From Paragordius varius (taxonomy: Eukaryota; Animalia; Nematomorpha): a stretch of 64,000 nt of DNA. Shown in pieces: positions 8,801 through 52,095 of this stretch. The notes below the pieces were generated by a model. It saw only the letters and a program-made list of their open reading frames with translations, ran no database searches and was not told the DNA's origin. The stretch is taken from assembly GCA_964247055.1 (NCBI GenBank), contig OZ176050.1, forward strand, positions 2,852,001 through 2,916,000, in the 5' to 3' direction. Every line of letters starts with the position of its first letter. Position 1 is the stretch's first letter. The translations under genes and the position numbers were made by a program.

Positions 8801-11800
8801 CATTTGCTGATAGTTGGGCATAACATACCTTTTAGTTTTGGAAGATTGAGCCGATTTGATGAGCAGTTTAGTGGCAGTTTTAAACCGTTTCTTACTTATA
8901 AGCCAAGGGATAGATTCATCAATGAAACTAGTAACAGAATACATTAGAGTTGAGGTTTTACTTAAGTAAGGGTAAGGCTTAAATTGTATTTAGGACCTTT
9001 AAAATTTTTAAGATTGGTTTGCTAGGGCGTTAAGCAATTTTGAGTATTAAACTGTCAGAGATCGCTTTATTACTCCACCACAAGTTTTATTTAACGAAAC
9101 CAAAAATGGCAAATTAAACAAAATAACTGTTGTTTTTATATCAATTTTAATGGGGTAAACAAAAATGTTTGTTAATGAAACTTAATAATCCAAATTTTTT
9201 ATTATTGGGCTAATAATACAAATATTCGTTTTTATACCATTTACAATTCAAATTCACCCCTGAACAATTCAAATTATATGTTTTTTAAGATTAAATTGCC
9301 TATATTTTTATATATTTTTAAAATTAATACTGAAAAAATAAAAACTATGCCATAAAGATATATTTCATATTAATAAAGAGTTGTATTAGTTCGAAAACAC
9401 AATTTATTTTTAGGGTGAATTTAAATTGTTTAAGGGTGAATTTGAATTGTTCGAGGGTGAATTTGAATTGTTCAAGGGTGAATTTGAACTGTAAATGGTA
9501 TATCTCAAATATTTAATTAAAATATTAAATCTCTAAGGCATAAATATGTTACTAAAATGGGATTATGAAGAATCCAATGATGAGGGCTGTAAAATTTTGC
9601 AAATGTTTCCAATACAAAATATGATAAGCCAGATATGAAAATATGATATGGCCCAACACAAAGTATAGGGTAGTTAAAACACACAATAGATAGCGTTTAT
9701 TCGTGGGCAACAGTTCTGAGTTAAGTACCATAATACATAAGAAATTACCCTATATTAAAATATAAGTGAAATTATTTTACCGCATGTCCAATGCCTTGCA
9801 AAATTCGGAAAAATCCAAAAGTAGCGTAATTCATTCGAAAGATTCCTGGTATTAATGTACAGAGAGATTGTAATAAAGTGCAAATGCCTAAAACAGGTTT
9901 TCGCCCAAACATATCTGAAATAAATGAACAAACGATTGCTCCAATCAGGTTTCCCACCATAAACACCGAAGAGGCCAAGGGAATTAGGTATTCACTGTGA
10001 TTTGTCAGATTCCACTTTATATAGATATAATATGCATTTTATAGAAATAATAGTATAACACATATAAAAATGTTGATATTTTTACAATAAGTGAGTAAAT
10101 AGGCTCAAAAATTTGGGATAAAATATAGATTTTTAAACGAATAATAAGGGTTATTGATTTTTAGGTTATCAGGCTCATTTAGTTTCCTTAGGGTAGATCT
10201 TACCGATACATTAATGACTGTAAATGTTAACGCTTTTAAAAATAACCATTCATTTAACATATGTTTCCTCTCTGATAAAAAAAATATATTGGTATCTTTT
10301 TTATAATCATATATTTATTAATTAAATACTATATCTATTTGATTTATAATGCATTATTGATTGCATTCATCGGTAAAACCGGTTATTTGATTGGGTAAAA
10401 ACTCAACCGCATCCCTAAGAGGAAAAATAGGAATGGTCAAATTTCATGCACCAGGTGTAGCCATTCTTTATGGTTTATTTGGTAAAAAACTTGTAATTTG
10501 AAGGAAATCAATTTTAGATAGAATATTGTCCGCCGGCTACTACACATAAGTAATATATGAATGACATTCCAGAAAGGCCGGTTGTTTTTTTGCGGAAAAC
10601 CATTCGCCAAGCGAGTTTCCACATCTTTGAAATTATTTGTTTTTTTACATGTAATACTTGTGCCAATCGACATTGAGTTTATTGGGAATCATCCCCCCAT
10701 AACTCTTGCATTTTATCGTTTTCGTAGTTGTGAGGCCTTCCAGAGGGCCCCAGACAAATTAACAACATTTTAATTTTCAAAACCATGAAAGTTTTAATCG
10801 AAAGAGCATGTTTATCATATTTTCCATCGACAGTTTTTTTCATCTGATGGTATAAGAAAAGAGAACAAGTACAATTTGGGTATTAAATGACATACCCTAA
10901 TTTTTGGACGGTTTTACTTGCGTGTGTTTTGTTTAATTTCAGATTAATAAAATGGCGTGTGTGTCAAATAAATCGGGTGCGTACTTTTCATCTACGACTT
11001 CTCATATTAAAACCGCTGATGCTTATGACTACACCTGATGAACTAAATATTGAAAATTATATTTTGAGCTTATCAAAGAATTATTTATTAACAATGTTTT
11101 CGATTTTGGTTTTTTTATAAAAATAAAGAATTTTAAAGGTTAGAATGCGTATACTTAGCTCATGTGCTAAATATTAAAAAAAATTGTAATAAAAGCTAAC
11201 GTTTCGGAATATAGTATATATTTTATTATACCTTAAAGCACCCTTTACATTAAAAAATTTAATTCCAAAATTTACCTTCTGTCATACTATTAATTTTATT
11301 CAATATGGATATGTTAAAAATATAGCGCTCGACTTTTTTCCATTAATTTTTAGATAAAACTTATTTTATACTATTGGAGCGTAAACAATGTTTATTTATA
11401 AAAAATATATATTATAATGTGCGGGCATTTGCATATTTACTTTAATTATGGAAAACATTGACATAACTTTATTTAGCCGGAGAACAAGAAACACTTGGTG
11501 TATTAGATCTAAAAAAATATAATCCAGAATTTTCTTATAACTATCGATATTGTTACCGTTTTTATTGCAGACGTTTGTATTTATTTTATATTTTTCTGTT
11601 TTTTGGCTTAATAAGCATTTATAATATGAAATAGGTAGGACCTTTTAAAAAAAGTCACTAAATTCTTTTATAAAATTAATATTTTATTAAAGAGAGTTAA
11701 AATAATCATAATTCTGCAACCATAGTTGTGGTATCGATCCCGGACCTGTTAAATATAAAATTAGCTTACGATACGTACAAAAAATTAAATTTATATTCTA

Positions 11801-12402
11801 TTGATTTTATGCCGCAAACTAGAGAAAAGTAGCGTATGTAAGTTGTTGAAAGCTATGGTATTGAATATATATTGTTTCGATAACAGTTACATCATCATAA
11901 AATACTCTTGTGACTAAGTTAAGCTTGTTTCATAAAAATAAACTTGCAAAATATTCGGTTTTCATATATTTAATTATCTATTGCAGTTAAAATAATAATT
12001 ATATCAGTGAATTTTATTATTATCTACCTTTTTAACCAATCCATATCGATTACAAGATGAATGTGTACCATTTATATTTTTAAATATTCCATCCCATTTA
12101 ATGGATGAAAATGGGAATTTAGACAATGAAACATTGTTAGTCTGTCGAGAATTGAAAAAAGACAAATTTTTGACAATATTATATTTATTATTATAATCCC
12201 TAGAGTTGATGTCTGTATGGTTGGTTACTTCAAAGTTAGTATTGTAACAAGAAAGTTTTTCATTGGTTATAAATGGGATCATATTGATTTGAAAGGAATG
12301 GCATAGCATAAAAGATGATATTAACATGTAATTCTTAATGTGATACAAATTGAGACCATTCTCATTCATAAATTGTTCCAGAAAGACATTGTTTGCTAAC
12401 AT
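5831..12402 (-). CDS. SLC22 / organic cation-anion transporter family (MFS), multi-exon
   Basis: ATG at 12402, TM1 plus Cys-containing extracellular loop (12028-12402); WNL..LASSVFMVGNLIGAIVCSFISDMFGRKPVL (~9776-10007); LAYHILYWKHLQ; FIDESIPWLISKKRF; YVAELFPTPLR|NMGYGINNAFGRIGYVMAPF; final exon FLPQTKGKPLPQTISDI* with TAA at 5831-5833. Exons between 12027 and 10008 are only partly resolved. Confidence 0.88.
6288..7368 (-). mobile_element. Decayed mariner copy B inside an SLC22 intron
   Basis: Minus-strand terminus TA|CCAGGTGTAGTCATAAGTTATTACCGATTT at 7368. Motif remnants STLRPNRFGKK, RHGKVVFL.DKAPS, SPDLA, EQHFNDFEDVV. Collinear nucleotide similarity to copy A. Left boundary degenerate and approximate. 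Confidence 0.85.
9233..9502. mobile_element. Foldback-like MITE with 21-bp subterminal tandem repeats, copy 1 (SLC22 intron)
   Basis: TIRs TATACCATTTACAATTCAAATTCACCC / GGGTGAATTTGAACTGTAAATGGTATA. The unit AAGGGTGAATTTGAATTGTTC occurs about 2x on the left (inverted) and 4x on the right. A second copy is at 37867-38187. Confidence 0.85.
10451..11038 (-). mobile_element. Internally deleted mariner copy C inside an SLC22 intron
   Basis: TIRs CCAGGTGTAGCCAT (10451) and GCTTATGACTACACCTGA (to 11038). Internal TGCGGAAAACCATTCGCCAA..CATCTTTGAAATTATTTG matches copy B near 6424. Confidence 0.8.
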
Positions 12403-12972
12403 ATTTTTGATATACGGATGGAAAGGATATATTATATTAGCTTATAAATGAAAATAAAAGCTGATTTTAGCAAATCTATGTTGTCCACATTGTATATTTA
12501 CGCGAAAAAAACCGTAAAATTGGTTTTTTATTCACGGCGACAACCTTCACAAGTTTATTTGGCAGTAAAATTAAAACAAATATTATAAATGACTATTAGT
12601 TTTTTACGTAAAACATATAATACACACATGATTTTAAGTTCTATAAATAAGTTCTACATCCTGCTTTAGGCCTTAATTATTATAATAAAAACGTTATAAA
12701 CAAATATTATTAACTTAAAAGCCGTATAGTAGTTGTTTTTAAAATATTTAGACACAAAAAAACAACAGTTATCTCAATATTTTTGTGACAGAGTCCAAAA
12801 GCGTCAAGTTAGAAATATAATTTAAAGCACGCTATGCTAAATAAATAAAATTTATTTTTGATTGTCCATATAAATATCAAATTTATATATATATATTAAT
12901 AAATTTACAAAATAGAAAATTCGTATATAAAATCTAGATAAAAATGTTATCACAAAATTTTGGATAGTGTTG

Positions 12973-15900
12973 TCAACTTTCAAAACGCTTTCTCAAATCT
13001 GCAAATGTGATTGATAATGCATTTTTCATTGTGTCGTTTCGTTCATCTTGATTATTTTTATTCACAATTATGTGATTATTGATAAAAAGGTTATTTTCAC
13101 AATTAATTGGTCCAATATTATCTGGGTCGTTTATATTATTATGTGGAGATAGTAAAGTGCTTATAAAATTATTTTCAAAGGCATCGTCAGTATTTGCGCC
13201 CTTTGGAGTAGTTGTTAGAACCTGGGGTAAAGGTTCATCGAAAATTGGGTGGAAATTTGTTGCAGCTTTAGATTTTTCCATTATAGGGGGAGGATGACCT
13301 AGTAATTTAATTAGTAAAAACTCACAAATTTAATATGGTAATTTTTTTATTAAAAATTTAATTACCGTTTTGAGTTTCGAATGATGGACTATGTTCATCG
13401 TTTGTAATGTTATTTGGTAATGAATTACAGATTTTGTTGTTTTTTAGTTCCTCGGATACATTTTGAGCAAATGTGCATGTAGGACTAGATTGAACATTTC
13501 TGTTAACAACCAATTTTTCTTGGGGCGTTGCTTTAAGCTTAAAGTTGTTATTAATTTCTGACTCAACAACAACTGAATGCCAAACAGAATGAGATTTTTC
13601 GGAAACTACAGTCGAGTTCATGTGATGTTCCTTATTAATTTGGTTTGTGTAAGAAGTTTTTAGATTCGTATTGTATGATTGATGTAATTCAATTGAAGGC
13701 TGTTTGTTAGCTAATACATCATTAGGGTCCATGAAAGAATTGGCAAAATTATTAAGCATTTTCCTTCCCTTATGCCGTAAAGATTTGAAACTAAGTGTTG
13801 AAGTGTTGAAATCATTTATTTCCGCATGGTTTGGTGAAAAGAAAGGAGAACTTTGTATAATGTTGGATGGAAGAAAATTATTAGTTATATTATTATCAGC
13901 CAAATGACTTAAACCATATTGTTTGCGACTCTCTTTTCTGATAAAATAAATATGATAAAACAAATTTTTCATTTATATAAAACCAAATTTTTGACTTTAA
14001 AAATGAGCAGAAAAATAAATACTTGAAACGTTGTCCATCACATTTTTCATTTAATTTATGATTGATAAAAAGAGAAATCCTATCAGCTAATTTAGGATTT
14101 ATAGTTGGTGCAATGCTTAATTCATCCAATTCATCAGTGAGGTTTTTGGTAAAAATCATGCTGGAACCATCTGAATTATGTGTAACACAGTCAGAAAAAC
14201 GTTTTTGTGCAAGTGTTTTAAGAGATACTGCACTTTCATAGTATGATGTGGAAGCGTATGTTTTGAAAAAAAGGTAACGCAGAGTATTTGTAGCTGGATC
14301 TGATATACTCTAATAAAAGGTGATATATATGAAGTTACATACTACAAGTTAATTATTTAAATAATTCATGAAAATAATCATATAATTATCGAATCCGATT
14401 AAAATTTTAGAAATTAACGTAAAAATGTGTATCGCCTTAAACAAACACATTAGCAATATTAGTTAATAATATAGCATCAACCCCTAATTGGTAAATAGTT
14501 TGAAAAAACTTTTTATGTAATAATTAATATATATATTTCATTAAAATATTACTTCAACGTTTCCATAATTTTCGAAGATGTGTTGTTTGTGTTTAATCAA
14601 ACATTGTTCCATTCTAACATGGAACTCCTGTAAGCTTTCATGGCATTTAACACCGTGAATTACAAGTCCCATTTCCAACAGTGGAATCTAATATAAAAAG
14701 TTATTCTTGTAATTGTAAAGGTGATAAAAATTGATTATATATTGGTTGGCTTATTAATTTTTCGCATAAAATTATAAGGGTACTTTATTAAAAGCCTTTT
14801 TTAAATCAAGGATGATAAGGTTTTTAAGAAAATTAAAGTTGAATGTCTCGGAAGGAATTTTGAGGAAGATAATTTTGCTTGAACTTGAAACAATTCAAAT
14901 CGACTAATGTTAGTTTAGAAACTTTTATACCGATATTTTTCTGCAGATATGAAAAATGTACATTTTCTGTCGAAAACAATTGAAGAAATTAAGACTTCAC
15001 ATGAAGGAAAAAAAACATACTTAAAATAACCTATAAATATTATAAGGTAAATGTGCTATCAATCATTTTTTACCTCACAAGTGAAAATGGGATACAAACA
15101 TAAAAAGTACCGGCAAACTCAGCAAATAATTAATTTTGAATGTTTTACAAGGAAAATCAACCAATTAAAAAAATTACCTAAATCAACCTAAATAGTCATC
15201 GTCAATCCTGATGAAAAAAAACAAAAAATTATCGTTTTTGGGAAAATACCATCAGTAATAACACTTGCCTCAATACAAAAGGCCTAATTGATATAATTGG
15301 TATCAGTCACACAAATAGAAACGGCTTATAAACTGGGTGGTATCAACATATAAATCCTCTAGATCTTCGCAACCTTATAGAAATAAAGCCAATCAATTAC
15401 GATCATCTTTCTCATATATTAACGACAACAATAAAAAAATCGATCGACAACGAAAGAACTCAACATGATAAAAAGAGATTGTTATGTGAAAAAATTGAAT
15501 ATTCCACACTAGTTTGACATCAAATTTGCAATCCAAAACGTATTTAGAAATTGTGAAAGAATTATACCACAGACTTAATGGTCAACCTGATCACCAGCAT
15601 GATATAATTAAAAGAAACTCCTAACACTCATTTAATTTATAAATTTTACTTGGGACACTATCAATTGCTTAAGGTTAAGAACTAATGTGGTATCTTCCGG
15701 ATTTTCTTCCAAATACTTGTCATTAAGAAAGGCCTATAAGATGGATAAATATTGATGATTTAATAAAATCAATGTTATACACCATTTATTTTTACTCATT
15801 TTCTACATGAAAAGCGTCAAATTTACAAATAATCAAACTTCTTTGTAAAAGTTAGATCTTTATATTTAATATTTAGCAGTTTTTCAATATTTTTTTCTCA

Positions 15901-18900
15901 AATCAAATAAAGATAAAACACTCCAAAAAACCTTTTCATAATTTGAGATACCGCCCATAACTGCCGGATCAACTATGCCATTTAGTAAAAGGCTAAGCGT
16001 ATTAACTGAAGAGTTTGCAAAATTATCACTCAATATTCCTGACGTCATACGCCTTGGGACAGAATTTCTATTAAAACTTTGATTTTCTCGTGGATTTGTC
16101 CCAGGCGAACACTTATTAACATTATTATTTAAACTACTATTATTATTAATTCCGGGCAGATTTTTTGTATGATCGCTATGTAAAAGAGAGGACAACTGTT
16201 TTTCAATAGATTCGTTTGAAAGGGTTATCAAGCTATTATTTGATTGATATGTTGGTAATAGATGTTGTTTAATGGCCGATTTGAGTTTCCTATTCGTTTC
16301 TTCCATAGTTTCAATGGCATTTTGCAGAGGACTAATATTTATCTATTTATGCATAGTATATATTATGATAATTACTGAATAAAAAGGGCGAATACGAAAT
16401 TTCCGTCCAAAAATCTGCAATTTATATTTAATATAATAAAGTTTATACGATTTGGCCAGTAATATATATGTATATAAAAACTGACACAGTGTTTTACACG
16501 TAAATAAACGGCAATAAAGGAACGTATTTTTATGTTTGGTTTTTACCGTATCTCCCCACTGTATTCCAAAAATAAACCATTTTTACAAATTAAAAAAACA
16601 TATATAAATCCTTACCACAAAAGTATCCAGGATAGGGACTAATTTTAACATTGAGGGCAGAGGGAATTGAGCATGAATAATGGTTTTTTCCACCCATATG
16701 TCCTAAATAAGAAATTACACTTCGAAATATATTTGCTTAAAATATTGTACTAAATAAAGCTTTTCAGTGCAATTTTTTACCGCAAATTCGTTTCCGTGGT
16801 TAGATTGGGAATTGTTAGTTTTCTTGGAAGGGAGGGGCCTTGTGTACTCAAAATCTTTGATTCCATTGTATTTATAATAGCTATGAATATAAATTAAAAT
16901 TTCATATATAATTTGTTAAACAATTTTCCAATAAGTTATTTACGAGCTAATTTGATCGGATACAAGGATGGTGGTGTCGAATTCTTTACAGTGTTCATTT
17001 ATGGGTGATATTTTATTAATTTGGATAACTATAAAATATAATAAACTCAATTAAAAAACTTTTTTTGTTGGAATGTTCAGAATACCCCTTCTCATCATCA
17101 TCAACATCATCAAATTTTGGTATTGATTGAATGTCAGGTAAATTAATTATCTATAAAATCCATGAATGACACATTTATTAAATAATTTCATGAATTTTAA
17201 AAATAATTTAAACTTAAAATATAAACTTGTGCATCTGGATGCATTTCCTTCATTCGCTGTATAAATTCGGCTATTCGTTCAAAAGCATTACCTCGGTAAA
17301 CAAATTCTTTATTCTGCAATATAAAAAAATTTAAAATTAATGTTTTTCCAATATTTGTAGGAAAAATTGCAGTTGTATTCATATATGGTGAAAAACTAGT
17401 TTGCAACTCGTGGATAAGCCCATTACATATAAAAAAATAGTATTATATTTAAATTGTAAAAATAAATTTAAATAAAAGAAAAAAAATGTCTTCTGCTATC
17501 GTAGTGCCCAAACCAAATGTTTTTTGATTCCAAAAAGTAATAGTTTCAGTTTTACAAACGGTTTCCCTTCCAATTAGCATTGGGGAAAAAATAAATTTCA
17601 TACCCTATATTTGGGTGGAAATTCGATTCCTATAAAGGCCACCCTGTAATATTCTATTTCGGGCCTGACTTGAGTCATTACACAGTTATATAGGACGGAA
17701 ATTAGTTCGTGCCAACGACATATTTGTCCATAATTAAATGTGGTAGAATTTGTGTAAAAGGCTATGATTTCATTGCATATAGCGATCGCAGGTTCCCATA
17801 ATTTAGCTCTTGCAAAATATTCAATGGCACATTTGTAATGTTTAATCTTGTCACATTCATCTACCGTCGTAATTAGATTAATTTAAATGTCAAAAAAATT
17901 ATATAAAAAAATAAATGCTAAATAACCTTTTAAATTCCATTCAAGGAGGTCGGCTTTCCGTTTATATACGTAACCAATTTCACCCCAATCTTTATTAGTA
18001 TAATGGATATGTGATAGTAAATCAAGATATTGTTGATAAATATCCCAATCTCCTATCAATCGAAAATATTCGGCCAAATTCCAAACAATGAACGTCTGAA
18101 AATCAATCTGATGCATTGAAGCGGGTAAAATGTTTGAATCTAGCAAAGATTCCTTAATTAAACGCCGTGATCCAGGGATCAGGTTAAATTTAGAACTGTT
18201 AACACAACGGAAATGATGTAGTAATTGGATTAAATCCAAACAATGCTTAGAGAAAGTGTTTAAAAATGTGGAAGTCTCTGTTTCCGAGGCGAATGAGGCA
18301 AAAAACGAGGAGAAATCTACTGAGAATGTCTGTAAATTGTCCAGTGACAAGTTGGTATTATTAAATATAATTATCAAATTATGCAAAATTGTATCACGGA
18401 ATGATGTATCAATATTTGAGATTCTGTGTAAGGATTGTCGTACAAAGAGATTATTGGTAATGTCATGTGAGCTTGAAGGTGGAAAATCAACACATCCGGT
18501 GTTTTGCACAGTGTTTAAAATATGGAATAAGCGAGATGTGTTCAGCCCGCTATACCGTTTTTGGTCTAAATCTGACACGATATCCCTAAGTAAAGCTAAC
18601 ATTTGCATTCGCGTATCTTTCAGAACACAACTAATGATAAATGAAAGCAAATGCTGCATCAACCTCTCATCCAGGATATAAAATATTTTAAGGGTATGAG
18701 GTATTGATCTCCAAAAAGTCATAATTTCTTCTATAAGCCCTAATTTAGTTTGAGTAGTATCAAATGGATTTGAATCTAAACTAATCCAATCTGTATAAAA
18801 TTTACTATGAGTATCAACCATATCCTGCAAACAAATAAGTTGCATATGCATAAACATAGTATTTAAGCGGAAACAATATTTTTCATATAGGGCAATCATG

Positions 18901-21900
18901 TTTAAGAATTTCCAAACACTATCCGGACTATGAGTGGAGTCATCATCGTATGAACATACCAAATATTGCGTGATTGGAGTTTGATATAATTGAGACGTCC
19001 GTCGAATATATTTTAAAACTTTACTAACAATTTCATGGACATGGAGCCTTAATGCAAGCCATGTGGGAGGATAGAAATACGGTTTTGAAGTTTTGGGCAA
19101 GTCTTCATTCACTAACTCTGATAACATAGGAAAACAATAATGAGAAATAAAAAATGATAATATTTGATATTGTACATCGAAGACTGTCACTAATTGAACG
19201 CCATACAAATTATCATCGTCTCTATTGTTAATTTGTTGGGTTATGCATTGTAATCCCTCTTCAAACATTTCATAATTTATAGTTTCAAATATTACGAATA
19301 TAATGGTATTATAAGATTGATAAAGTTTGAAATTATGAATTCTATTTTCCAAATATGGTATACAAACCAATAGCGTTATGTGGTCAAAGAGGAAAAACCA
19401 AAAAGGGTCTTTTGTGCCCGAAAAATGTTTTGAAGGATAGCATAATACCATTTTTATAATATTAGCATTGATTGTTTCATACACGGTCAAAAGTTCAAAC
19501 ATATTCGTTAACAGTACAATAAAAGTATCCCCATTTTTAAAGAATGTATCTTCATTAAAAATGGGAGTGCCTTTTATGGTACAGTATGAATTGTTCAAGA
19601 GATATGTAATAAACGGTAAAAGTTGACGGTCCCACAACACAAGAAATATATCGATATCCATTATATGGCGAAGACTCTTTAAAATACCGATTAAGCATTC
19701 AATTCTTTGGGTCTTGAAAGCACTAAAAGGTAAATTGCACAGAATATCAATTATGAGCGTAAATAGGTGAGATGGTTTTGACACAAGCTGATTGAAGTGT
19801 ATTGATGCAGGCACCAAATATTTTAATATGCCGGCTTGGATAAGTGATGCTTTGGCATGACAAGTTTTGATGGTTTCGTTATTAGCAGCGTTAGAGTTAG
19901 TGTGCACCGAAAAATCGACATTGCTAAAATTAGCATTAGAAGATGTAACTGAGTTTTGCTCCTCCCGTCCACTATCATTGGAAAGAGATAGGTTAGTCCC
20001 TGAATTCGTCTCTAAATCAAAAACTGTTGGAAGACTAATTTTATTTTCTGCCGAAAAGTCGCTAGAAAAATGATTTAAAGAATGATTTTCGTTATCGTAA
20101 CCAATAAGCATAAAATCGGTGGCTAATTTTAACAAACATGTTATATCGTTCTCATAATCTTGTAGATCAAACTTTTTCCCGTTAGGATCCAATAAGGCGT
20201 AGTGATCAATGGATTTAATGGAAAAAAGAACTAAAAATTCACTAACTTTTAGTATTTTTAGCAAAATTTCATGGGAAAGTGTAAGTGAACATTTATAATA
20301 TTTGTGTAAGGAATCGTTGATGAATGAGATATTGTTATTATTTGATTTCAACGATTCTAAGGAAATATGCTGAATATTAATGGTTTCATACTGCGACACG
20401 GATCTTTGTAAAGTGTTTAATGGTTTTGGAAATTTGTTATAGAAAACATGTCCTAAATGTAAGTAGGTGCAAAGCAACTTCAGAATTTTTCGATGAATCA
20501 ATGTTGAGCTAAAACTTCCCATAAGATAATTGTCAATTACATTTTTGTAATGAGAATATTTTCGGTCTGTAACGACGCCCAAGACTGATACCAAAGCTTC
20601 AAAAACAAGAAAATCCATTTCATCAAGCTCGTTATATTGTGGTTTTGCCGCATATATTAGTCTGTATATAAATATAAATACATTATTGATAAAATTCAAT
20701 GTTAAATGGCAAGTGAAACGTCAAATATATTTTTGCAATAAATTCATTTGTTTTATCATAAAAATAAACATTATTAATTTACTCATTATCTTTTTGTTGT
20801 TCCACGTTTTCAATGCAATCATAAATTGTAGCTGACAAAGAATTATCCATATCTATATCATCATTAGTAGGTTTGTAATCATCACATATTGGGCGCTTAA
20901 CAACAAGTATGGCAAATAGGGCATCCATTATATCTGGGAGATATTTGACAATTTCATTTGCTTCAATTTTTGGCACATTTTTGAGGATGTCCTGTAAAAT
21001 AATTGGATCCCTACACTCATTCCATGACAATAAACGGAGCAATATTTCTAAATTTTATTTAGCATACAAATATAAACACTTTTATTTAGTTTATTTGAAA
21101 CTTTAAATAATGGTATTAAGATATCCTAGTCATATTGGTACTAAATAAATGCCAAAATAAATTATAAGCTTTTCGGCTTACCGTTCTGCGTTAATTTTGT
21201 CGAGAAAAGAGCTGATTTTACAATGAATGAATCTTTCAAAGAAGCCGCTAATCCAAATTGTTTTTCCAATTCCTCGGTGGTTTCTAATTTTGTTTGCATA
21301 AATTAACTTCAAATTTTATATATGGATATTAGAGCAACAAACCACTTAATCCTAACCTTTTATCTACATTATCATAAAACTGCCATATTAACTAAAAAAA
21401 TTTAAGTAATTATATTGTAGAGATTTTATAATTTAATATAATCTGTAAAACATAAAAGTAAGAATATTTATATAAAGCGTAACAAACTTTCCATATTCAT
21501 AGCAAAAGATGTTGGATCAATCTTTTGTTTAGGCTTAACCGCTGATTTTTTCCATGATAAATTATTTATGCTTTTTTTCTTAGGCCTATCAACCATTTTT
21601 ACAGAGTTGGAAACGCCAAAACTCTTCATAAGAAAATCTTTTGAGGGCGATTTTTTTATGTTAACATGCTTAATCCCCGTGTTATTTGATTTTGGTGAAA
21701 AACTGTCCGAAACATCACAATCCTGAACCTCAAGTTTGGTGTAAGGTAATTTTAAAAAATCTTGACAATACTGTGAACCAATCCACTTTTTGACATCAAT
21801 CTACAGCGCATTAAATTAATTTAAATTTTCATGTTTGATACAACTTTATTTAATATTGCAACAATAAAAAAAATATACTATTCTGTAGACTAAGAGATGA

Positions 21901-24900
21901 TGGTGGCCATTAGTCAGGGCAGTATATGTATTTGGCCCAATCAATGGTAAATAAGAGAGGGCAAATGGAGTTTCACTCTTATCTTTAGCTAAAAAAACAC
22001 ATTAAGGTACAATTTATAATATTAATGATTTTTAGAAAAACACCACCTTACAAGGCTTATTTTTGCCAATTTTTCTATTTTCATATCCTATTGATATTAA
22101 AATGTGGTGTATAAACTCTTTACAGTGGTAAAAGAGCATAAATAAATGATAATTTTGACGTTATAATTATGGGAATTAAACACAATAATGATTGTGAATT
22201 TAATTTAACGAAACCTATTAACGAAACGGGAAAAAAAAGGTTAAGTTAAAAGATATGATGGAACAAAACTTGACGCGATTAATAAAAAGAAAAAAAAATC
22301 AATAAGTAGGAAGATTATAATTGAAGAAATAACATTAGAGACGGTGTGTTCATTCATATTTTTAAAAAAGTTCCTTTTTAATGTTTAAAAGATGTTGTTG
22401 TGGTATTGAAAGTGTATTATAGCGATTAAAGTAGACTTCATTGTGTTTCAAATAGGCAATTAAAGTAAAGATTATGGGAAAAAAATAATTAGGTGGAAAA
22501 CACAATAACATCCCAACATCATCTTATCACCTTAAATGTTGAAAGGTTATAAAATAATTTCATCCTTGGATAACAAAACAATAAAAAACAATAATATAAC
22601 TTTTTTGAGACTACAGATAATTGCGCATCCATATAGTTAGATATGCATGTTTCAAAAAAAGGAAATCCTGTTTTAGTTTGAATTTTTAACAGACGATTGT
22701 TTGATAATTAAACACCACTATCCTAATTATTCGCTAGTTAAGGATGGCTTATCTTTTACGCTTTACGGAAATTAAAGAAGGGGGTCGAAGAGCAATTACT
22801 AATGCATTAGATGAAGGTCAAAATGAAACATCTTCATCTTATCGTAACAAATGTGGCCTATTTCTCATAAGCCTTTCCTCCAAAATTTTACGGGAAGGGA
22901 GAGGTATGGGTGCCAAATCTACGACACCCAATCTCTATTCCAGATCCATTTTCTATGGAAATCACAAATGGTCAATTACGTTTTCCTTAAAGTATAGAAA
23001 GGCAGCGAGTACCGCCGAAACTAGAAAATCATCTATCGTAGAATCAAAAACCACCACAGAGTCTAATGTGGTATCTGAAGCGAGCTCAGACGAATACTTG
23101 GCATGTTATCTAACGTGGCGAAACGAAAATCAGGGTCAAATGACATGCGTTTTGGACATGGTTATAACCTTAATCCATCCCTACCATTACAGCAATAATG
23201 TAAGACTTGAAATTTATAATTGTGAATTCAATGCACAAAAATTATCGTACGGAACGAATCGCTTCGTTAGCCTTGAACAATTAATCAATTTCCTGCCATC
23301 CAGTGCAATAAATTTTGAGGGCTGGGCCGGTGACAGTAAAAGCAATAACCTATACCAAAATGATAACGATTCGATTGCCGGTGCTTTTTTAATTACCCAA
23401 CGCAATTTGTTGGATACAACCAATGAAAATAATTTTTTTATTCAACTTGAATTGCGACACATACGTACCTACTATGAACAAACGTTTACCCTCAAAGATT
23501 TCCTATTCAATTTCAACCGAGATGAAAAGTTTGCCGTAAAAGGAATAGATGGTAATGCAACAAAGCAATCGGAAAGAGATGATGACAATTTGGATAAAAA
23601 ACATTATAGACATTTACCCAAACTCCCTTTGATGGGAAAAAAGGCACCGATAACACAGGAAACATCCATCATATCCAAATTTATTATCTTACCCAGACCT
23701 GAATTGGAAAAAAGTTTTAAAAAGAAAAATATTGCAAGAGGCAAAATTACTGATACTCTACGCAACGATCAACAATATGGACAGAATGATACGGACAAAG
23801 GAGCTATAAATAAAACTCTACGCGTAGAAAAAGGTCCTTTTGATTACAAAAGCTTGAACATACTAAAACCGATTCCACAACCCATCGTTAAGAACGAAAG
23901 TATGCTTGAAAATGTTGAGCGTACACAACAGGGTGCATTTTTCAATTATGGGAAATTTGAATGGAATATAGTTGTTTTACCCATTATAGAAATCGTTTCC
24001 GATGAACATGAAAATTTAGAAAAAAAGCCACAAGCAAATGATCCACGAGAACTTAATGGCAGCGTACGCAAACGTAGTATTACGGATAAATTACTACTAA
24101 CAGGTATTGGTAGTGTTTTTGGTGCTAAAACAACCGACAATACAAAGGATAACACTGAAACCATAGAGCCTCAACGGAATTCATCCGTAAAAGAAATTAT
24201 ATTTTTTGAGGGCCTAATTTTGGGTCGCAAGAAGCTTGGTAAATCTCGCATAAAATATTTTTATGTGCTCAAAGGGTTTCGCATCTTTTTTAATCGACAC
24301 ACTCACGTTGAACAAGAATGCCATTTGGAATATAGAGTAACTCTTATTCCATACCCTGAAATGCGTAAAGTTAAAATAGAGGAAAAAGAGGAGAGACCAG
24401 CCAAAAATTCCTTAATTATACCAGAAATAATTGAACCCTTGGAGAGTGGCGCATTGCCCATAATTAATTCGGAATCAGGAGATGACTCCATCAAAAAGGA
24501 GAAAGAGAAAAAAGATGATTCCAACAACAACAACATGTTAAGTGCCGATTGGCTCGACAATTTTTTGAAGAAAAGATCATCATCAACTTACGCAAGTTCA
24601 CCACTATTCCCTAAAGTTAAACTTCACAGATCGGAAGAGGAAATAAACAAGGTAGATAACAGTGGTGTTTCCGTTAAAAGAGTATCCATGTTACGTTCAC
24701 CATTCAGGTCAAGGAGTAGAATGATGTCACAAATCACAATGCCTGATGCCACGAGCGAAAATGAGGATATAAAATTAATCCCAAAACCACCTGACTGGTT
24801 AATGATGGCCCATTGTAGCAAATTACTAAGTAATCGATCTACGAGTAATCAAATGTTTACGGTACATGAGAAACAGGATGAATGGCACAATTTTAGGCAC

Positions 24901-27900
24901 AAAATATTTACACCGCTAGATTTTAAGCAAAATTATGTTGATACCAATTCTATACTGTTTGACAAAAACATTTTACCACCCAATCTCTATTTCAATGCAC
25001 GGAACAAAAATGGTGATGATGAGGGTGGACCAACTGAACGAGCATACTTGCTTATAAATAATAAGGTTGAACCAGAATGGCCCCCGGATGAACCAAATAA
25101 TGATGGGAATGAGGATGTGGATGCCGTGTTTGGTAGCCAAAAAAATAATTTAGATATGTCCGTTAATATGAAACAATACAAAATTTATCGGCCATCACAC
25201 ATACCCATTTTCCCAAATCTGCGGGAAAGTAAACGATCACGCAAATCAACTATGGTGAGCCAAGGTATACAAGGCCAAGATGGTGCTAATGAATCATCAC
25301 TAGGTGCTCCCCCTGCTGAGAAAAACAATGAATTTGAAATGAAGATAGTTGTGTACATTGAATTGTTGGATATATGTAATGTGACACATTTACAGCCTAC
25401 GGTAGAGTTGGGAAAATATACGTTGGAAAACTTTTATGAACCAACCACATCAACGATGGATGAGGAGCAAATAGCTTGGGCCCTTGAGGTAGGTAGTCGA
25501 TCAGGGTATCTCAATATGGCGCTATATTATTCGGATCTCATTAACATACCTCGGAATCATTTAAGGTACATAGCATGGGAGATACAGTTGATTGCAAACC
25601 CAAACAAACTGGCAACACAGGCCGAGACCGAAGTGACAAATTCAAAAACGCGAGATAAAAGTCCAAAAGTGCTTTCAAGAAAAAATTCTAGCAGTCATGA
25701 AAAGGATGAACCAAATTTTAAATCAAAGTTACCCAAATCTGCCCATAAAATCTTGAAGGAATTGGTCAGAACGGGAACAATCGATCTCACTGATAAAATA
25801 GCGAAAATGGATAAAAATTTGGTTAAAAAGAATGAAACAAAAATTAAATCACCCTATTACGATGAAAATAATCCGCCACTCTTGATTAAAGATGTGGGAA
25901 TTGTTAAAACAAACAATCCCTATATGCAAATCGATAAGGAAATTTTATATTCCACACCGCAATCCCAAAAGTATATGAAATATTATGTGCAACAAACAAC
26001 GAACACAGACACGGGTACTATAATGCGAACCCCATATCTAATTTCTGAGGTAAAATTAATCATATACTTTTTTTCTTTTTTTGTGATAAATGAACGCGGA
26101 CATAAAGTGTTTCAAAAACAAAATATTACTTTTAAAAATATCTATGTAAGCAATGTAAAAAATATTATTATTTTTCAGATATTGGATCCTAAATGTCCAT
26201 TCCTATGGGACAAAAATCAATTAAATATCAGGTTAGAATGGAAGGATAACATACTTCTCTCACAAAATAACTATTCGCAAATGGATGAATTGGTATGGAG
26301 ACAATACACGTATATGAGGTTAAACTTTTAATTATAATATTGTTGAAGGTTATTGATTATTAATATTAGAAAAAATATGACTATGTTTATGTTATATTGT
26401 TTAGAAATGAGTTGTTAGCCCTACGCAAGGATAATTTCATGTTAGAAAAGGAAATGGTAAATTATCAAAAAGCAATATCACTTTTAAGCAATAAAAAATA
26501 ATGTATAACGTATTTACAACTTATTTTTACCTGTATTGTATTTAGCATATAAATATGGCAATAAGTTTAAATTTTACATTAATCGTAGAGGATATAATAT
26601 GTAGGTATATATCAAATAAATATTTTCATGCAATATATATATATATATATATATATATAGATATGCATATATATGTACCATAAAAAGAATGTCTTAGGAC
26701 AAACGTAAAGCGCAAATGACATTCATGAAATAATTCTACAGGCAGCGATAACTATATATTAGAGTAAAAATATTAATTAGCGTACATCATATAAAACACA
26801 TTACACATATTAAAACGGGCAAAATATCGGGGGGAAAAACAATTTGTAATAATTTAATAGCAATCAAAACGCAAAAGAATGCATAAAAAACGGTAAAGTA
26901 AGATAAACTTTAAAGGATTCATCCCACTTCGGTTTATCATCGTGATACACAACACATGATTTAAAAGTCGTGACCAATGCGTTAGGCTCATTTGATATTC
27001 CCTTGCAAATCATATTCTGGCAGAGAAGATAAATAAAAAAGCAAAATAAAAAAATACTTTTTTACCAAAAAAGCTTTAAAGTTTAATAATTTTTGTAAAA
27101 ATATGCATAAGTATTTATAACAACGATAATAAACTTATTTTGGCCGAAAACAGGACAACTTTTAATTAATCTTCAAAACATGGGAAAAATAAATGTGAAC
27201 AAATTTAAAATATAAATTGGCGGTATTGTGTTTTATTTGTAGTCAAATTTATTTTTAGACAATGAGCATGATAAATTTAATAATATATGAAAATTCTCCT
27301 TAAAATAAGTAAAGCGCAAAAAATTATATTAGAATAATATAAATAATTTATTTTGGTTTAAATATATCGAATTTTTTATGTAAATCTCAATATACATTTT
27401 TACTATAATAATCAATTTATGATGGTTTAAAACCCTAAACAGCAATCTTATCAACAATTTTAAGAACTAATAACGATAATACCATCAAAGTTGTTTTTTA
27501 CTTATATTAAAGCTTAACTAGTCGTTGTTAACATATAATTGTAAGAAGCGAAAGTTATTGTATTAATTTGTAATTAGCAATAATTAAATTACATTTCTAA
27601 TAAATTTAAATATTTTTGAATTTACAATTCCAATTTATCGTAATTTATGTATTAAATTATAAAAACTTTCATAACTTACGCCTTATATACCTATATGAAA
27701 GGTGATAACAAACATTAAAGATGTCTTGTTTTAATTTGGGTTATACCGTCTTTTATTTAAGCGTGTGACGATATAACAGCTATAAAAGCGGTTTAAGAAT
27801 ATTTTTTACGATTCTCAATTAATATATTGTAGCAATAAAATTAAATATTTTTGATTGGTTGTATAAATTTGAAAATGTAAAATATTTTTTACTCTACACG

Positions 27901-30900
27901 TCTGTAAAAATTTAGAATTCTCAAAAATATAAACAACAAAAAAATTTCACAGATTCAGACGTATTCATGCTTAAATTTAAATAAATTAGCAGAGGTTTAG
28001 ATATTCAAGTGGTTAGCGAATTTTAGTTTTTGCATACTTTTACTTATATGGCACTTGTTTTTTATTAATAAATAATAATTAACAACCAAATAATGAAGCA
28101 TTCTTTGGAGGCCTAATTCACTCAATCTAAAATATCAAGTCTGTAAAACAAACATATAGAATCTGGAAAATTGACACGATTTTTTTATATAAACAAATTT
28201 TCGAGTATTTTTTATACGAAAAAAATGTAAGATATTAAATTACTTCAATTAATTTGCCTGTTTTATCGTGCAAAGTTACATCGACCTGAATGCTTCTCTC
28301 ATCTATTTGTAGGATTGTTTTAGCGGATGATTTGTGGCTTGAATCGCTTAGCGATAAAACATTGCGAAAAAGTTCAGCAGCCACCAAAGTTATGTACAAA
28401 TCATTTCGAAACTCGTCTTAAATAAATCACGGGAATTAATATTGAGCGTGATTAAAAATAAATGAATAATAAACTTACTTGGTTGAATAATTTCAGTTGA
28501 ATCCATACGGCCTATTTTAACGCTGTTTCTTGAGATTTTAGTATCCTGTGATAGAGAGAGATATACATTTTATATGTTAAAAATAGAACTTTTGTGTATA
28601 TGGCAACTCGTAACACTAGTTTAGTACAAAAAATATTTGATAAGTATAAGAGTTTAAATAACGAAAATTAATTTGACCCAAAATCATATTTGAAAATATA
28701 TCATCTTATAAATATTTAACGCAAGGAATTACTAATTACTAAAATGACCGTTTATACCTAAATTAAAATATGTATAGATTTATATAATAATTCAAAGTAC
28801 TCTTTTTATATATGATAGATTCAAACTAAAATTGGATAATAACTCCAATTTTATCAATATACTTTTAGAAATTGATAAAAACTAAGTAATAAATGAAGGT
28901 AGACCTCATCATTCAATTTATCAAAGCGCTTAAGAGAAACCCATATTCCCAAACCATTATTATTTATGATTTCAGGATTTTGAATGATTTTTTTAATAGC
29001 TTGCGTTGTACTTTCATGCTCCACACAACTAATTTATAAGCATTATAAAAAACTTATTATATTATATCATATAATTTAAACAAATTTGTCAAAGGATAGA
29101 ATTAAAATCTTTTAATAAATGAAAAATTAGCAATATAATAAACGACAAATCGCATACCTAAAAATAATATTTGAAAACGAAAAATATAAACTAGGTTCCA
29201 TAAAATTTAACCCTATTCTTATCATTAAAAAAATGTTAATCGTTAGTAAATTTATATAAACATAAAAAATTACAAGTATGTTAAACATCACATAAATGTT
29301 GGGAACTGTAAAAAATTAATTACAGGGAAAAGGGGATAAAATGTTGAATCGATGGATCCGTATTACAATCACCGCGCAAATATTCAGTAATATCCAATGC
29401 TATTTGTATATAAAAAAAATATAATTATTTATCAATAAAATATATGGAAGACAAATATTTTTTATATAGTTAAACCATATTTCTAACATAATTTTTTTAA
29501 TGTAAAGTAACGTTTTAGGCTGGGTATTAAGGAATTGTAAATTGTTAAGACATTCAAATTTTGTTTAACAATTTGATATTAATGGTTTTCTTTAAAAAAA
29601 TAGTCTTTTATTTTTCATGTTTTTTTACAATTAAAATTCTTATTCGGCATATATAAACGAAAAAATATCCTATAATTAAAATAACCTGCAATCGCATAAG
29701 GACGTCTAATATTATGAGTCAATTTTTCAATATCTTTCATTAGTGATGTATTAATATCCATAGTTCCTATGCACAAAAATATAATTTAATTTTTTATTTT
29801 CAATTAAATTGTATGAAAATCATATTAATAATCGATTGTGACTAAAAATGTTGCGAATTCATGTAGAAAATTTACAACAATTTTTATATTTCAAATCAGC
29901 TTAGGCCATCCATATCATAAAAAATCTAGCTACAACCGCTATATATACTTAATGTTCATGATATAAAATGGACAAACAATTTAAATATATAAATATATAT
30001 ATATGTAGCGAATCTCCTAACTACGATTGCCATGGATTAATAGGTAAAAAAGGAGCTTCTATTAAAAAAATAATTAAAAAAAGGGGCGATAAAAAATGAA
30101 CGTGGTAATTTATTTTAAATAAAGGGTTGAGCCATATAATAGACAGTTCCAGCCCATCAGCTTTATTTAGTAACGCATTTATTACGTTTTTGGATGGTTT
30201 CTCTGATTTTTCTATCATGTTGATTTTCAATTTATCTAATTTCCTAGACTTGTGAAGAAATCTAATTAGAAAATCTAAAGGAGCCATAGCCTAAGGGTAA
30301 AAGACCATGAGCAATACATCAGCAAAGGCAAATGGGCCAGTCAGAACTTATTGGCACAAATAATCATACAATAATTAAAGTTGAGAAGGTCATAACTAAT
30401 ATTAAAATCAACATAAAACGAAAATCAGGAAAACCATTGAAATCCAAAAACATAAGGCATAATTAAATAAATATGATGGGCTGGACCTGTCTACTATATG
30501 GCTCACTTTTTATAATAATTTATTTATTTTTTTATAAATAAAAGCTCCTTTCTTTTTACATAAATCCAGGCATTCATAGTTATGTGATTCGCTAACAATT
30601 ATACATAAACATTTTAATTGCTAATGTCCACTTTTTTATAACATCACTTGCTATACATATATATATATATATATATATAGCGGTTGTAACTAAATTTTTT
30701 ATGATAATGGATGACCTAAGCAGATCCAAAATATGATTTTTCTTAATTTTTTGTAATTATCGAGGATTCACATTTTTAGCCACAATAAATTATTTATATT
30801 ATTATTTAAATATGCGCAATCTCTCCACTTTTTGATTCATCAAGTCAATGATGGACTCTATAAATCAATTTTATAACTTGAATTTTACCTACCGATATGA

Positions 30901-33518: not shown

Positions 33519-34035
33519 GTCATTTGTATTGTGTAGATGCTGTTGATTTCTACCATTGGTTTTAAATAACTACAAACAAAACTTTAACTCATCAAACTAT
33601 ACGTATCTATCATATACTATATTTTTATCTTACAACATGATCAACCAATTAAAAAAATAATTTCTTTAATTCTTTTGTGCGGGTATACTATAATTAGGAT
33701 CATTTGAAGGTATGTAAAAATATGTAAATAAAATTAATTGCTCTATCGGAGTATAGGCACTGCAAATATTGTCATTTGTGTTGTGTGGATGCTGTTGATT
33801 TCTTCCATTGGTTTTAAATGACTAACAAACAAACCAAGTAAATCATCAAACTATACCTATCTATCATATACTATATTTTTATCTTACAACATGATCAACC
33901 AATTAATAAATATATATTATCATAAGATCTTGAAATTTTTTTTTGTTGTGCGGGTATACTATTATAAGGATCATTTGAATGTATATGAAAATATGTATAT
34001 AAAATTATTTGCCCTAATCAGAGTATAGGCACTGA
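33519..34035. repeat. Diverged tandem duplication, two units of ~252 and ~265 bp
   Basis: Units start GTCATTTGT at 33519 and 33771. Both contain ATCTATCATATACTATATTTTTATCTTACAACATGATCAACCAATTAA, TGTGCGGGTATACTAT and GAGTATAGGCACTG. Confidence 0.9.
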
Positions 34036-35563
34036 ATAAAATACGGTATAAGTAGCACAATTGAATTGATTGATGATATGGTTAACTTAACTGTAACTTT
34101 ATTTAGTAAGATATCAAATCTTAATCGTATTATTATTAACTGTTTTGTTATGGTTTAAGCTTGACAAGGTACTGATACTCCAGCCGGCTATTTTTAAAGA
34201 CCAATAAATGGTTGAATACTACTTGTTAACTATAACTTTCTTAAGAAAATTATTATTATATATATTTCGCATTTTAAATTGAACATTATAAATTGTTTTT
34301 TTTATAAAAGAAGACTCGACTTGATACGTTTATTCTTCACGCCAACAATTTTTAGGTAGAAGTAGCGAATTGAATGGTTTACAAAACTCTCTTCATCAAA
34401 ACTTTGCTAAGGGATTTATCCATGCTTTCAGTAAAAAATCTTTTCTCAAAAATTAGCATACCTCTCTATATTTGTCTTTCTCTTCGGCCCTTCTACTTTA
34501 ATCCCATTTTAAACAGGCTTTAAATTTTTGAGACACATCAGGCTAGCTAAGTCTAAAAAAATTGGTATAACACTTACCTTTTCAATTTTTTGTTCCAGTT
34601 TATGTATTGAATAGTTTTATATCCCAAAGTTAAATTTCGTAAATATAGAGTTTTGAAAGTTATTTTAGTTTAATCATATGTATATGATAAATAAATATTA
34701 TATCTTTACAATTTTGTGACACTTATTGTGTCTATTGGGACAGTCCCGAAACTAATAAGATGATATTAAAATCAAAATATATTAACATTTTTTTGGTAAA
34801 TTAACTTGTGAATTTTTTAATAATTTCTTCTAACCATAATATACATTTATTGCCCGTTGAATTGCGCAGTGTCTACCAAAAAAATATGATAAAATATACA
34901 TATTCTGATAGGAAAATGTATCAGCATGTTGCTTTTGGCCCTTGCGAGTGATATAAGAAAGTTATTTACACTTTTGTGATAAGTGCTCCGCATCTGAAAA
35001 TGGCAAAATTGGCCCACATCTTTCATAAGTATTTTATCAAAGCTAAAGGCTTCATTCCAAAAATTATTTATAAAATATATCATAAAATTCATGTAAAAAC
35101 CTATGTGGGCTACGAAAGACCTAATATTTTTTGCTCTTCTAATATGAACTAGTTCTCTTAAAATAATTAATGCCGAGATGGCTTCATAAAAATTTAATTA
35201 TATACTAAATTTTGATATAAATATTATTTTAAAATCAATGCATACATTTTCCAAAAATTTATTCGAAAATTTCGTTGAAGTTTTTTTATCCTTTGAAACA
35301 TGATGGCTAATGCCTATTTAGAGCCTAAATACAAAAATTTGGTTACAAAAAAAAAGGACAGTTCATGATTGTAAAATTTAATAAACTAAATATAAGGGTA
35401 CAGATATGAGTCAATTGTAATCTTATTATTTAATACTGAGGTCAATTTAGAGAAAACTCATTGTAACAGTGATTTTTACCCGATCATTAAATAAATAGAA
35501 TTATTTGGCGAAAGGATTTCAGCTTTCCTCGTGTTTTAATCATTACTCACGTTTATAGTTGAT

Positions 35564-52095
<16,532 letters not shown>

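Follow-up and report, generated by a model that had tools for sequence, protein, structure and literature searches.

Genes that lie on the opposite strand inside an intron of another gene are well described and frequent in animals. In Drosophila, ∼6% of genes are given as intronic in PMC3786989, which also covers a known pair, 2mit inside an intron of timeless2, and PMC3192792 places ∼63% of human nested genes on the strand opposite their host. This paper also cites a study of nested pairs, 109 from human and 752 from fly, in which expression was not correlated, and reports that human cell models have demonstrated transcriptional interference at nested genes. Here, we describe a host and its nested gene in a horsehair worm, Paragordius varius (Nematomorpha), within a 64,000-nt stretch of contig OZ176050.1 (positions 2,852,001 to 2,916,000; hereafter the window, in whose coordinates all positions are given). 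As in the animal pairs covered by these excerpts (2mit/timeless2; the human pairs of PMC3192792 and PMC11694760), the nested gene, or guest, is a complete gene with its own signals, on the opposite strand and within one intron; here the guest fills 80% of that intron. The initial annotation had ranked the locus as the strongest candidate in the window for an undescribed system. We do not retain this ranking: the layout is no new kind of system, and the locus is very probably an ordinary host/nested pair, in which a minus-strand DOCK gene holds an independent plus-strand coding gene in a 4.7-kb intron of its DHR-1 domain.

The host, which would encode a Rac/Cdc42 GEF, was recognized from a series of exon matches; Pfam and other searches, for DOCK and guest alike, were run exon by exon. 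Pieces matching the Pfam DOCK-C2 profile lie collinearly on the minus strand and span profile positions 3-185. The first (28417-28238, profile 3-46, E 0.002) falls in the exon that starts the C2 domain with RNDLYITL... (28244..28417, minus strand, 5' boundary approximate, donor GTAATT at 28243). The second (27061-26867, profile 44-83, E 7e-6) covers a 108-nt exon whose boundaries were read directly and which encodes ...VVYHDDKPKWDESFK (26909..27016, minus strand). It is followed by a 73-nt exon encoding LSLPVELFHECHLRFTFVLRHSFY (26679..26751, minus strand, profile 77-96, E 0.012), which lies between the acceptor TATATAG and the donor GTACAT (GT at 26678-26677) and ends in phase 1, its 3' end reading ...TTT TAT G. 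A 110-nt exon (21879..21988, minus strand, donor GTATAT at 21878) then encodes (A)KDKSETPFALSYLPLIGPNTYTALTNGHHHLLVYRI and matches profile positions 102-135 (E 8e-5), and the end of the domain (21302-21165, profile 154-185, E 0.011) lies at the exon 21182..21302 (minus strand, 5' boundary approximate, donor GTAAGC). Each of these matches alone scores below the Pfam gathering score, as expected for pieces of only 24-65 aa.

Downstream of the C2 pieces, TPR_DOCK matches occur at 21054-20782 and 20699-17886 on the same strand. The second of these lies in a large exon with a 938-codon open frame (17883..20699, minus strand), which runs from the TPR/ARM region into the start of DHR-2 lobe A, scores 46.5 bits against TPR_DOCK (cut-off 27) and has DOCK5 as its best PDB match (E 3e-6). 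Within DHR-2, the match to lobe A is weak at 15.3 bits, and that to lobe C scores 26.4 bits, the cut-off being 26. On one strand, the host thus has the domain order of DOCK-A/B GEFs, with C2 (DHR-1) first, TPR/ARM next and then lobes A and C of DHR-2, and this order, together with the codon phases, points to a DOCK-family gene that would carry DHR-1 and DHR-2 on a single polypeptide. Compared with DOCK-A/B GEFs it is very divergent, and the DOCK5 match is the only pointer to its subfamily. Word-based protein searches with the 938-aa exon, taken whole or as residues 1-130, returned no relative, including no Gordionus DOCK; full-length DOCKs probably lie beyond the length range that was searched.

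The initial annotation had joined the exon at 26679-26751, ending in a phase 1 G, to the exon at 21879-21988 as one contiguous DHR-1 motif, and coordinates, phases and C2 collinearity all agree with this junction. The acceptor side on the minus strand reads TTTTTTTAG and then CT AAA GAT AAG, with the AG at 21990-21989; the phases are compatible, and the junction codon G+CT encodes Ala. The residues HSFY and this Ala are exactly the five needed for DOCK-C2 profile positions 97-101, and therefore no exon is missing between 26679 and 21988. The resulting GT..AG intron (21989..26678, minus strand, 4690 nt) splits DOCK-C2/DHR-1 between profile positions 96 and 102 and is, as had been claimed, the longest that could be delimited locally, the neighboring DOCK introns measuring 78, 157 and 1227 nt. 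It is long because the guest gene occupies it: the guest coding span runs from 22744 to 26501, and what is left without the guest is 932 nt of AT-rich DNA, inside the 78-1227 nt range of the neighbors. The guest coding span and its AATAAA lie entirely within this one GT..AG intron, which is flanked by collinear DOCK-C2 exons, and the guest is in this sense nested.

On the plus strand, the 755 nt from the DOCK acceptor to the guest ATG (21989..22743) presumably hold the promoter and 5'UTR of the guest, with a GC content of 0.257 against 0.368 in the guest CDS. The coding sequence starts at the same Met-Ala-Tyr as the protein of Gordionus (Nematomorpha), the guest's only close relative. Coding exon 1 (22744..26049, plus strand, 1102 codons) is homologous to Gordionus P0001/P0003 (E 5e-123), and P0001 terminates at the same residue as this exon (...LITE against ...LISE). 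Exact look-ups retrieved a record for P0003 and none for P0001 or P0002. Intron 1 (26050..26178, plus strand, 129 nt, GTAAAA..TTTCAG) is in frame and lacks a stop, so that the raw reading frame continues past exon 1 (22744-26331, 1195 codons). Coding exon 2 (26179..26318, plus strand, 140 nt) encodes ILDPKCPFLWDKNQ... and matches the P0003 C-terminus; exon 2 of Gordionus is 60% identical to it (E 4e-18). After intron 2 (26319..26404, plus strand, 86 nt, GTTAAA..TTTAG), coding exon 3 (26405..26501, plus strand) encodes (R)NELLALRKDNFMLEKEMVNYQKAISLLSNKK followed by the stop (26499-26501) and aligns with the Gordionus C-terminus NELAALRRENISLEKEMFNYQKAISLINSKSP. Both small introns sit at exon-boundary positions of the Gordionus protein, each at the same residue. 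An AATAAA at 26615..26620 (plus strand) is the likely polyadenylation signal. The earlier description of an opposite-strand gene of ∼1180 aa that fills most of the intron, with its stop at 26501 and an AATAAA at 26615 near the DOCK donor, therefore holds: the product is 1180 aa from three coding exons, and the two signals lie 178 and 59 nt, respectively, from the DOCK exon.

The length of the guest frame is far from what chance would give, since the longest open frame in 200 shuffles of the intron was 166 codons versus 1197 observed, and the chance of 1102 open codons by composition is ∼1e-36. Among the variants listed from DNA runs, 17 guest coding changes are synonymous versus 7 non-synonymous, and the coding indels (12, 12 and 3 nt) are all in frame. 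From the exon 2 donor to the stop, four indels are listed (26326, 26368, 26369 and 26400); each is a single base and lies inside the predicted intron 2, the only place where single-base indels occur, and a 4-nt insertion is listed immediately past the stop. This pattern of variants indicates that the guest reading frame is under purifying selection, and host and guest both appear to be genuine, selected genes.

The guest had been called an adaptor-like MATH protein, an assignment that is upheld by fold and by remote relatives and is not matched by a Pfam hit of its own. A Pfam scan of the guest protein gave no family at E<=0.1, including MATH (PF00917) and MATH_2 (PF22486), and a sequence profile search of the PDB returned only a spurious designed-protein match. 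In the AlphaFold model, which has a mean pLDDT of 50 and is of low confidence outside two beta-sandwich cores, residues 36-244 superpose on the USP7 TRAF domain with a Z of 14.1 (rmsd 1.9 Å, 124/138 residues) and form the eight-stranded antiparallel beta-sandwich of TRAF-C/MATH type. The second domain of the compact relative P0014 is also a MATH domain (Z 11.2 versus USP7), its top nine matches all being MATH, TRAF, Siah or meprin, and P0014 matches Pfam MATH_2 at 47.2 bits. We found 16 remoter relatives, with E values between 6e-11 and 8e-4. The ones looked up come from crab, mite and annelid and are uncharacterized, some of them under the name "MATH domain-containing"; of ten that were scanned, seven match Pfam MATH or MATH_2. 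Conserved motifs are collinear between the guest and these relatives along the whole length, and W407, R518, D906, W912, D931 and R937 are invariant. The absence of a Pfam match of its own means that MATH membership of the guest rests on fold and transitive homology. These data support placing it in an uncharacterized animal family in which two predicted beta-sandwich domains of MATH/TRAF-like type are combined with a short coiled coil at the C-terminus.

Described members of this fold are the USP7 N-terminal TRAF-like, SPOP MATH and TRAF2/6 TRAF-C domains, which share the eight-stranded beta-sandwich; SPOP and TRAF6 score close behind USP7. The guest differs from them in an identity of only 8-15% and in having no BTB, RING, zinc-finger or protease domain, with two MATH domains, a short coiled coil and hundreds of inserted residues instead. 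Its family kin include Scylla KAK8379270.1, Dermatophagoides KAH9511141.1, Owenia CAH1779752.1 and Gordionus CAK9299855.1, the last with exon boundaries that match those of the guest. Compact family members are mostly 305-510 aa, with a few of 609-831 aa, versus 1180 aa for the guest, and a stretch of ∼223 aa in compact members corresponds to 854 aa in the guest and 889 aa in Gordionus. In this lineage, insertions that are probably disordered enlarge the guest by ∼630 residues. Judged by its fold and by what other MATH proteins do, the guest would most likely be an adaptor or scaffold that recognizes short peptide motifs, in the groove of the beta-sandwich.

We then considered whether the nesting might itself be a functional unit, in which antisense transcription of the MATH gene and of DOCK interferes or regulates, giving coupled or exclusive expression and a layout kept by selection. 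The guest stop and AATAAA lie near one DOCK exon and its ATG is 756 nt from the other, a closeness at which polymerases on the two strands would have to cross, and the interference reported in human cell models is a precedent for such an effect. Conservation of the nesting in relatives, which the initial annotation had proposed as a check, was not borne out: no DOCK host surrounds the family members in Owenia (annelid), Dermatophagoides (mite) or Scylla (crab), and across the Gordionus locus, which spans 46.5 kb (OX940785.2, 34,706,783-34,753,302), tblastn and motif scans were negative for DOCK exons and motifs alike. A DOCK host paired with a tandem-MATH guest was absent from the search results of this analysis, and we found no described pathway that connects DOCK with this MATH family. 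The survey cited in PMC3192792 also speaks against systematic expression correlation of nested pairs. Nothing found here links DOCK and MATH functionally, and we consider a functional unit unlikely; both the "undescribed system" and DOCK-MATH co-regulation are speculation. Also improbable, and somewhat more so, is a scenario in which the guest moved into, or was enclosed by, the DHR-1 intron in the horsehair-worm lineage, and in which its antisense packing against the DOCK exon would force mutually exclusive expression of the Rac GEF and the tandem-MATH protein as a lineage-specific switch.

The locus could also be an assembly artefact, in which two DOCK fragments were misjoined around an unrelated gene. 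A (TA)n-rich simple repeat (26624..26677) abuts the DOCK donor and breaks short-read contigs; these do not span it, and independent assembly support ends ∼70 nt before the donor. On the other side of the question, two studies provide contigs over the acceptor side and the entire guest gene, and the two DOCK exons agree in residue and codon phase, have proper splice signals and lie on the right strand and in the right order, a fit that a chance misjoin would not yield. We therefore regard an artefact as very unlikely. The five sequencing runs that contain the stretch behave as DNA, with contigs over non-coding parts and without splice joints, and five other species-labelled runs contain next to none of it; the 26679-to-21988 junction and the guest mRNA are thus predicted from sequence logic and homology.

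Least credible of all is that the guest is a retrogene or mobile element inserted into the DOCK intron, an idea suggested by one very long exon of 1102 codons, by an insert that makes up most of the intron and by the missing Pfam match, and largely refuted by two spliceosomal introns at positions common to Gordionus, by a repeat search without flanking direct or inverted repeats or element-like termini, by the absence of transposase or reverse-transcriptase domains from the Pfam results, by membership in an animal gene family that has a single locus and, elsewhere, multiple exons (genes spanning 3.7-29 kb), and by the purifying selection on the guest. An Rfam search gave no match.

Under the preferred reading of an ordinary host/nested pair, the guest would be an independent plus-strand unit that has its own stop and poly(A) signal, two small introns and, presumably, a promoter region. 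Transcription of the DOCK pre-mRNA would run across the guest, and splicing would remove the whole guest unit from it, while the guest would be transcribed separately from the opposite strand. Host and guest would in this way be transcribed, spliced and functionally independent of each other.

The main value of the locus lies in annotation: gene callers that rely on ORFs only or are blind to nesting would split DOCK or miss the guest, and both models are fixed by the present coordinates. The pair also adds a data point for Nematomorpha, a very poorly studied phylum. Finally, it brings to light a conserved, uncharacterized tandem-MATH family that insertions of hundreds of residues have lengthened in two genera of horsehair worms, and in which an intron at the same position measures 129 nt here versus 20.7 kb in Gordionus.

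The initial annotation placed a complete antisense gene inside the intron that splits the DHR-1 domain of a DOCK gene, and this layout is correct: two phase-compatible C2 exons flank the intron at 21989-26678 (4690 nt), which encloses the guest gene. The surrounding sequence is AT-rich animal DNA (GC 0.24-0.38) in which the Pfam DOCK-C2 (DHR-1) profile is matched in strict order over a series of small minus-strand exons: profile positions 3-46 at 28417-28238, 44-83 at 27061-26867, 77-96 at 26751-26679, 102-135 at 21988-21879 and 154-185 at 21302-21165. On the same strand, TPR_DOCK follows at 21054-20782 (positions 4-36) and at 20699-17886 (positions 40-97, 46.5 bits), the latter in a 938-codon exon that also holds a weak DHR-2 lobe A; DHR-2 lobe C comes after this exon, at 16306-15884. 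DOCK5 is the top match of the host among solved structures. The 938-codon exon (17883-20699) is unusually long compared with the 73-110-nt C2 exons, and word-based protein searches found no relatives of it because the region is so divergent. Beyond the DOCK 5' end, plus-strand clathrin heavy-chain exons at 35632-36114 and 50086-50469 (Clathrin_propel E 2e-10; Clathrin repeat E 5e-10) indicate a second large gene.

Read on the minus strand, GTACAT directly follows the DOCK exon ending at 26679 and TGTTTTTTTAG directly precedes the exon starting at 21988. One base of the first exon (G) and two of the second (CT) form an Ala codon; together with HSFY, four residues left unaligned by Pfam, this Ala supplies exactly the five residues for profile positions 97-101, which leaves no gap between the two exons. 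The neighboring DOCK introns that could be delimited measure 78, 157 and 1227 nt. The one weak point of the join is that all short-read contigs break at 26624-26677, a (TA)n-rich palindromic tract abutting the DOCK donor site. We rejected a wrong assembly join, which would not yield two C2 exons that agree in order, strand and phase and fit together to the residue.

An open reading frame of 1195 codons (22744-26331) runs along the plus strand of the intron; the longest in 200 shuffles of the intron was 166 codons. The sole close relative among 5.8 billion proteins comes from the horsehair worm Gordionus sp. m RMFG-2023 (E 5e-123). A partial Gordionus model ends in ...TPFLITE at the point where the window has ...TPYLISE then GTAAAA, and the full-length isoform P0003 continues with ILDEKCPFLWDKNQ... 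to the C-terminus NELAALRRENISLEKEMFNYQKAISLINSKSP; its C-terminal part is matched in the window by exon 2 (26179-26318) and exon 3 (26405-26501, stop TAA). This boundary and these matches give three plus-strand coding exons (22744-26049, 26179-26318 and 26405-26501) and a protein of 1180 aa, bearing out the original estimate of about 1180 aa; searches were made on single exons. Intron 1 (26050-26178) is 129 nt long, in frame and without stops, so the raw reading frame runs through it; its retention would add 43 residues with the frame unbroken. An AATAAA at 26615-26620 (plus strand) lies 59 nt from the DOCK exon. In the Gordionus RefSeq annotation, P0002 and P0004 are separate loci, LOC135926282 (596 aa) and LOC135926925 (561 aa), that share a 90% cluster with an 1177-aa ENA model, and the orthologous gene may be split or duplicated there. 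A mobile-element origin of the guest was rejected, as both of its introns sit at conserved positions, neither direct nor inverted repeats flank it, and Pfam found no enzyme domains in it. No RNA families were found near it.

The sequencing runs that contain the stretch give contigs over non-coding parts and without splice joints; they are therefore DNA and provide variants, not expression evidence. Among the variants listed, 17 of 24 guest exon 1 substitutions are synonymous and 7 non-synonymous, a ratio that rests on part of the variant list and is indicative only. The coding indels listed are 12, 12 and 3 nt long. Single-base indels occur at 26326, 26368, 26369 and 26400, every one of them inside predicted intron 2, and there is a 4-nt insertion at 26506, shortly after the stop. 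Such variation is what a functional coding gene shows, and it lends the intron model independent support. Over 21400-27100, four runs (X1-X4) with two organism labels from two studies show 95-99% identity and many variants in common, which points to a highly heterozygous organism or to closely related taxa.

No Pfam family was found in the guest protein. An exhaustive HMMER search retrieved sixteen further relatives (E 6e-11 to 8e-4); those named, from a crab, a mite and the annelid Owenia, are uncharacterized, some labeled 'MATH domain-containing', and Pfam MATH or MATH_2 lies near the N-terminus in seven of ten relatives scanned. Pairwise and multiple alignments share motifs in the same order over the whole protein length, with W407, R518, D906, W912, D931 and R937 invariant. 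In an AlphaFold model of guest exon 1 (mean pLDDT 50, confident in cores only), the best structural match of residues 36-244 is the USP7 TRAF-like domain (Z 14.1, rmsd 1.9 Å, 124 residues), and SPOP and TRAF6 score nearly as well. The second conserved region, modeled from the compact relative P0014 (pLDDT 79), is predicted to form a MATH sandwich (Z 11.2), its top nine matches all being MATH, TRAF, Siah or meprin. The family thus comprises two MATH domains and a short C-terminal coiled coil. A stretch of about 223 residues in compact members corresponds to 854 in the guest and 889 in Gordionus, and the model predicts no structure for the extra guest residues (pLDDT <50 at 260-387, 435-488 and 539-859). 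Relative to compact members, which are mostly 305-510 aa, the guest has about 630 low-confidence, probably disordered residues in and near the second MATH domain (260-387, 435-488, 539-859 and 970-1071), and the Gordionus region is expanded much as the guest's. From its fold, the guest would have an adaptor-like, peptide-binding role.

The nesting was not found in the relatives examined. In the Gordionus locus (OX940785.2:34,706,783-34,753,302; 46.5 kb), guest exon 1 occupies 10001-13294 and exon 2 occupies 33982-34122. Intron 1, at the same codon position, therefore spans about 20.7 kb (13295-33981) versus 129 nt here, a 160-fold difference; no other genes are called in this locus. Eight DOCK exon peptides searched against it by tblastn had no match above chance, and four DOCK-C2 motif patterns gave two stray one-pattern matches only. 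This negative reaches 10 kb; as Gordionus introns are much larger, DOCK exons could lie farther off. The same patterns recover the window's own exons, with one similar chance match elsewhere in it. Among called genes around family members in Owenia, Dermatophagoides and Scylla, no DOCK host was found. The nesting is therefore not ancient and at most specific to the lineage of this horsehair-worm genome.

It is textbook knowledge that animal genomes contain genes nested in introns, most of them oriented opposite to the host. The DOCK/guest pair is likewise a gene in an intron on the opposite strand and belongs to this known kind of arrangement. The evidence does not support the proposal that it is an undescribed system. 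Published figures put about 6% of Drosophila genes in introns (PMC3786989) and about 63% of human nested genes on the opposite strand (PMC3192792); one study, as cited in the latter, reported no expression correlation across 109 human and 752 fly pairs. Interference is described as possible in particular nested cases (PMC3192792; PMC11694760). The tight antisense packing, with the guest AATAAA so near the DOCK exon, may have regulatory consequences, and the observation is useful for annotation.
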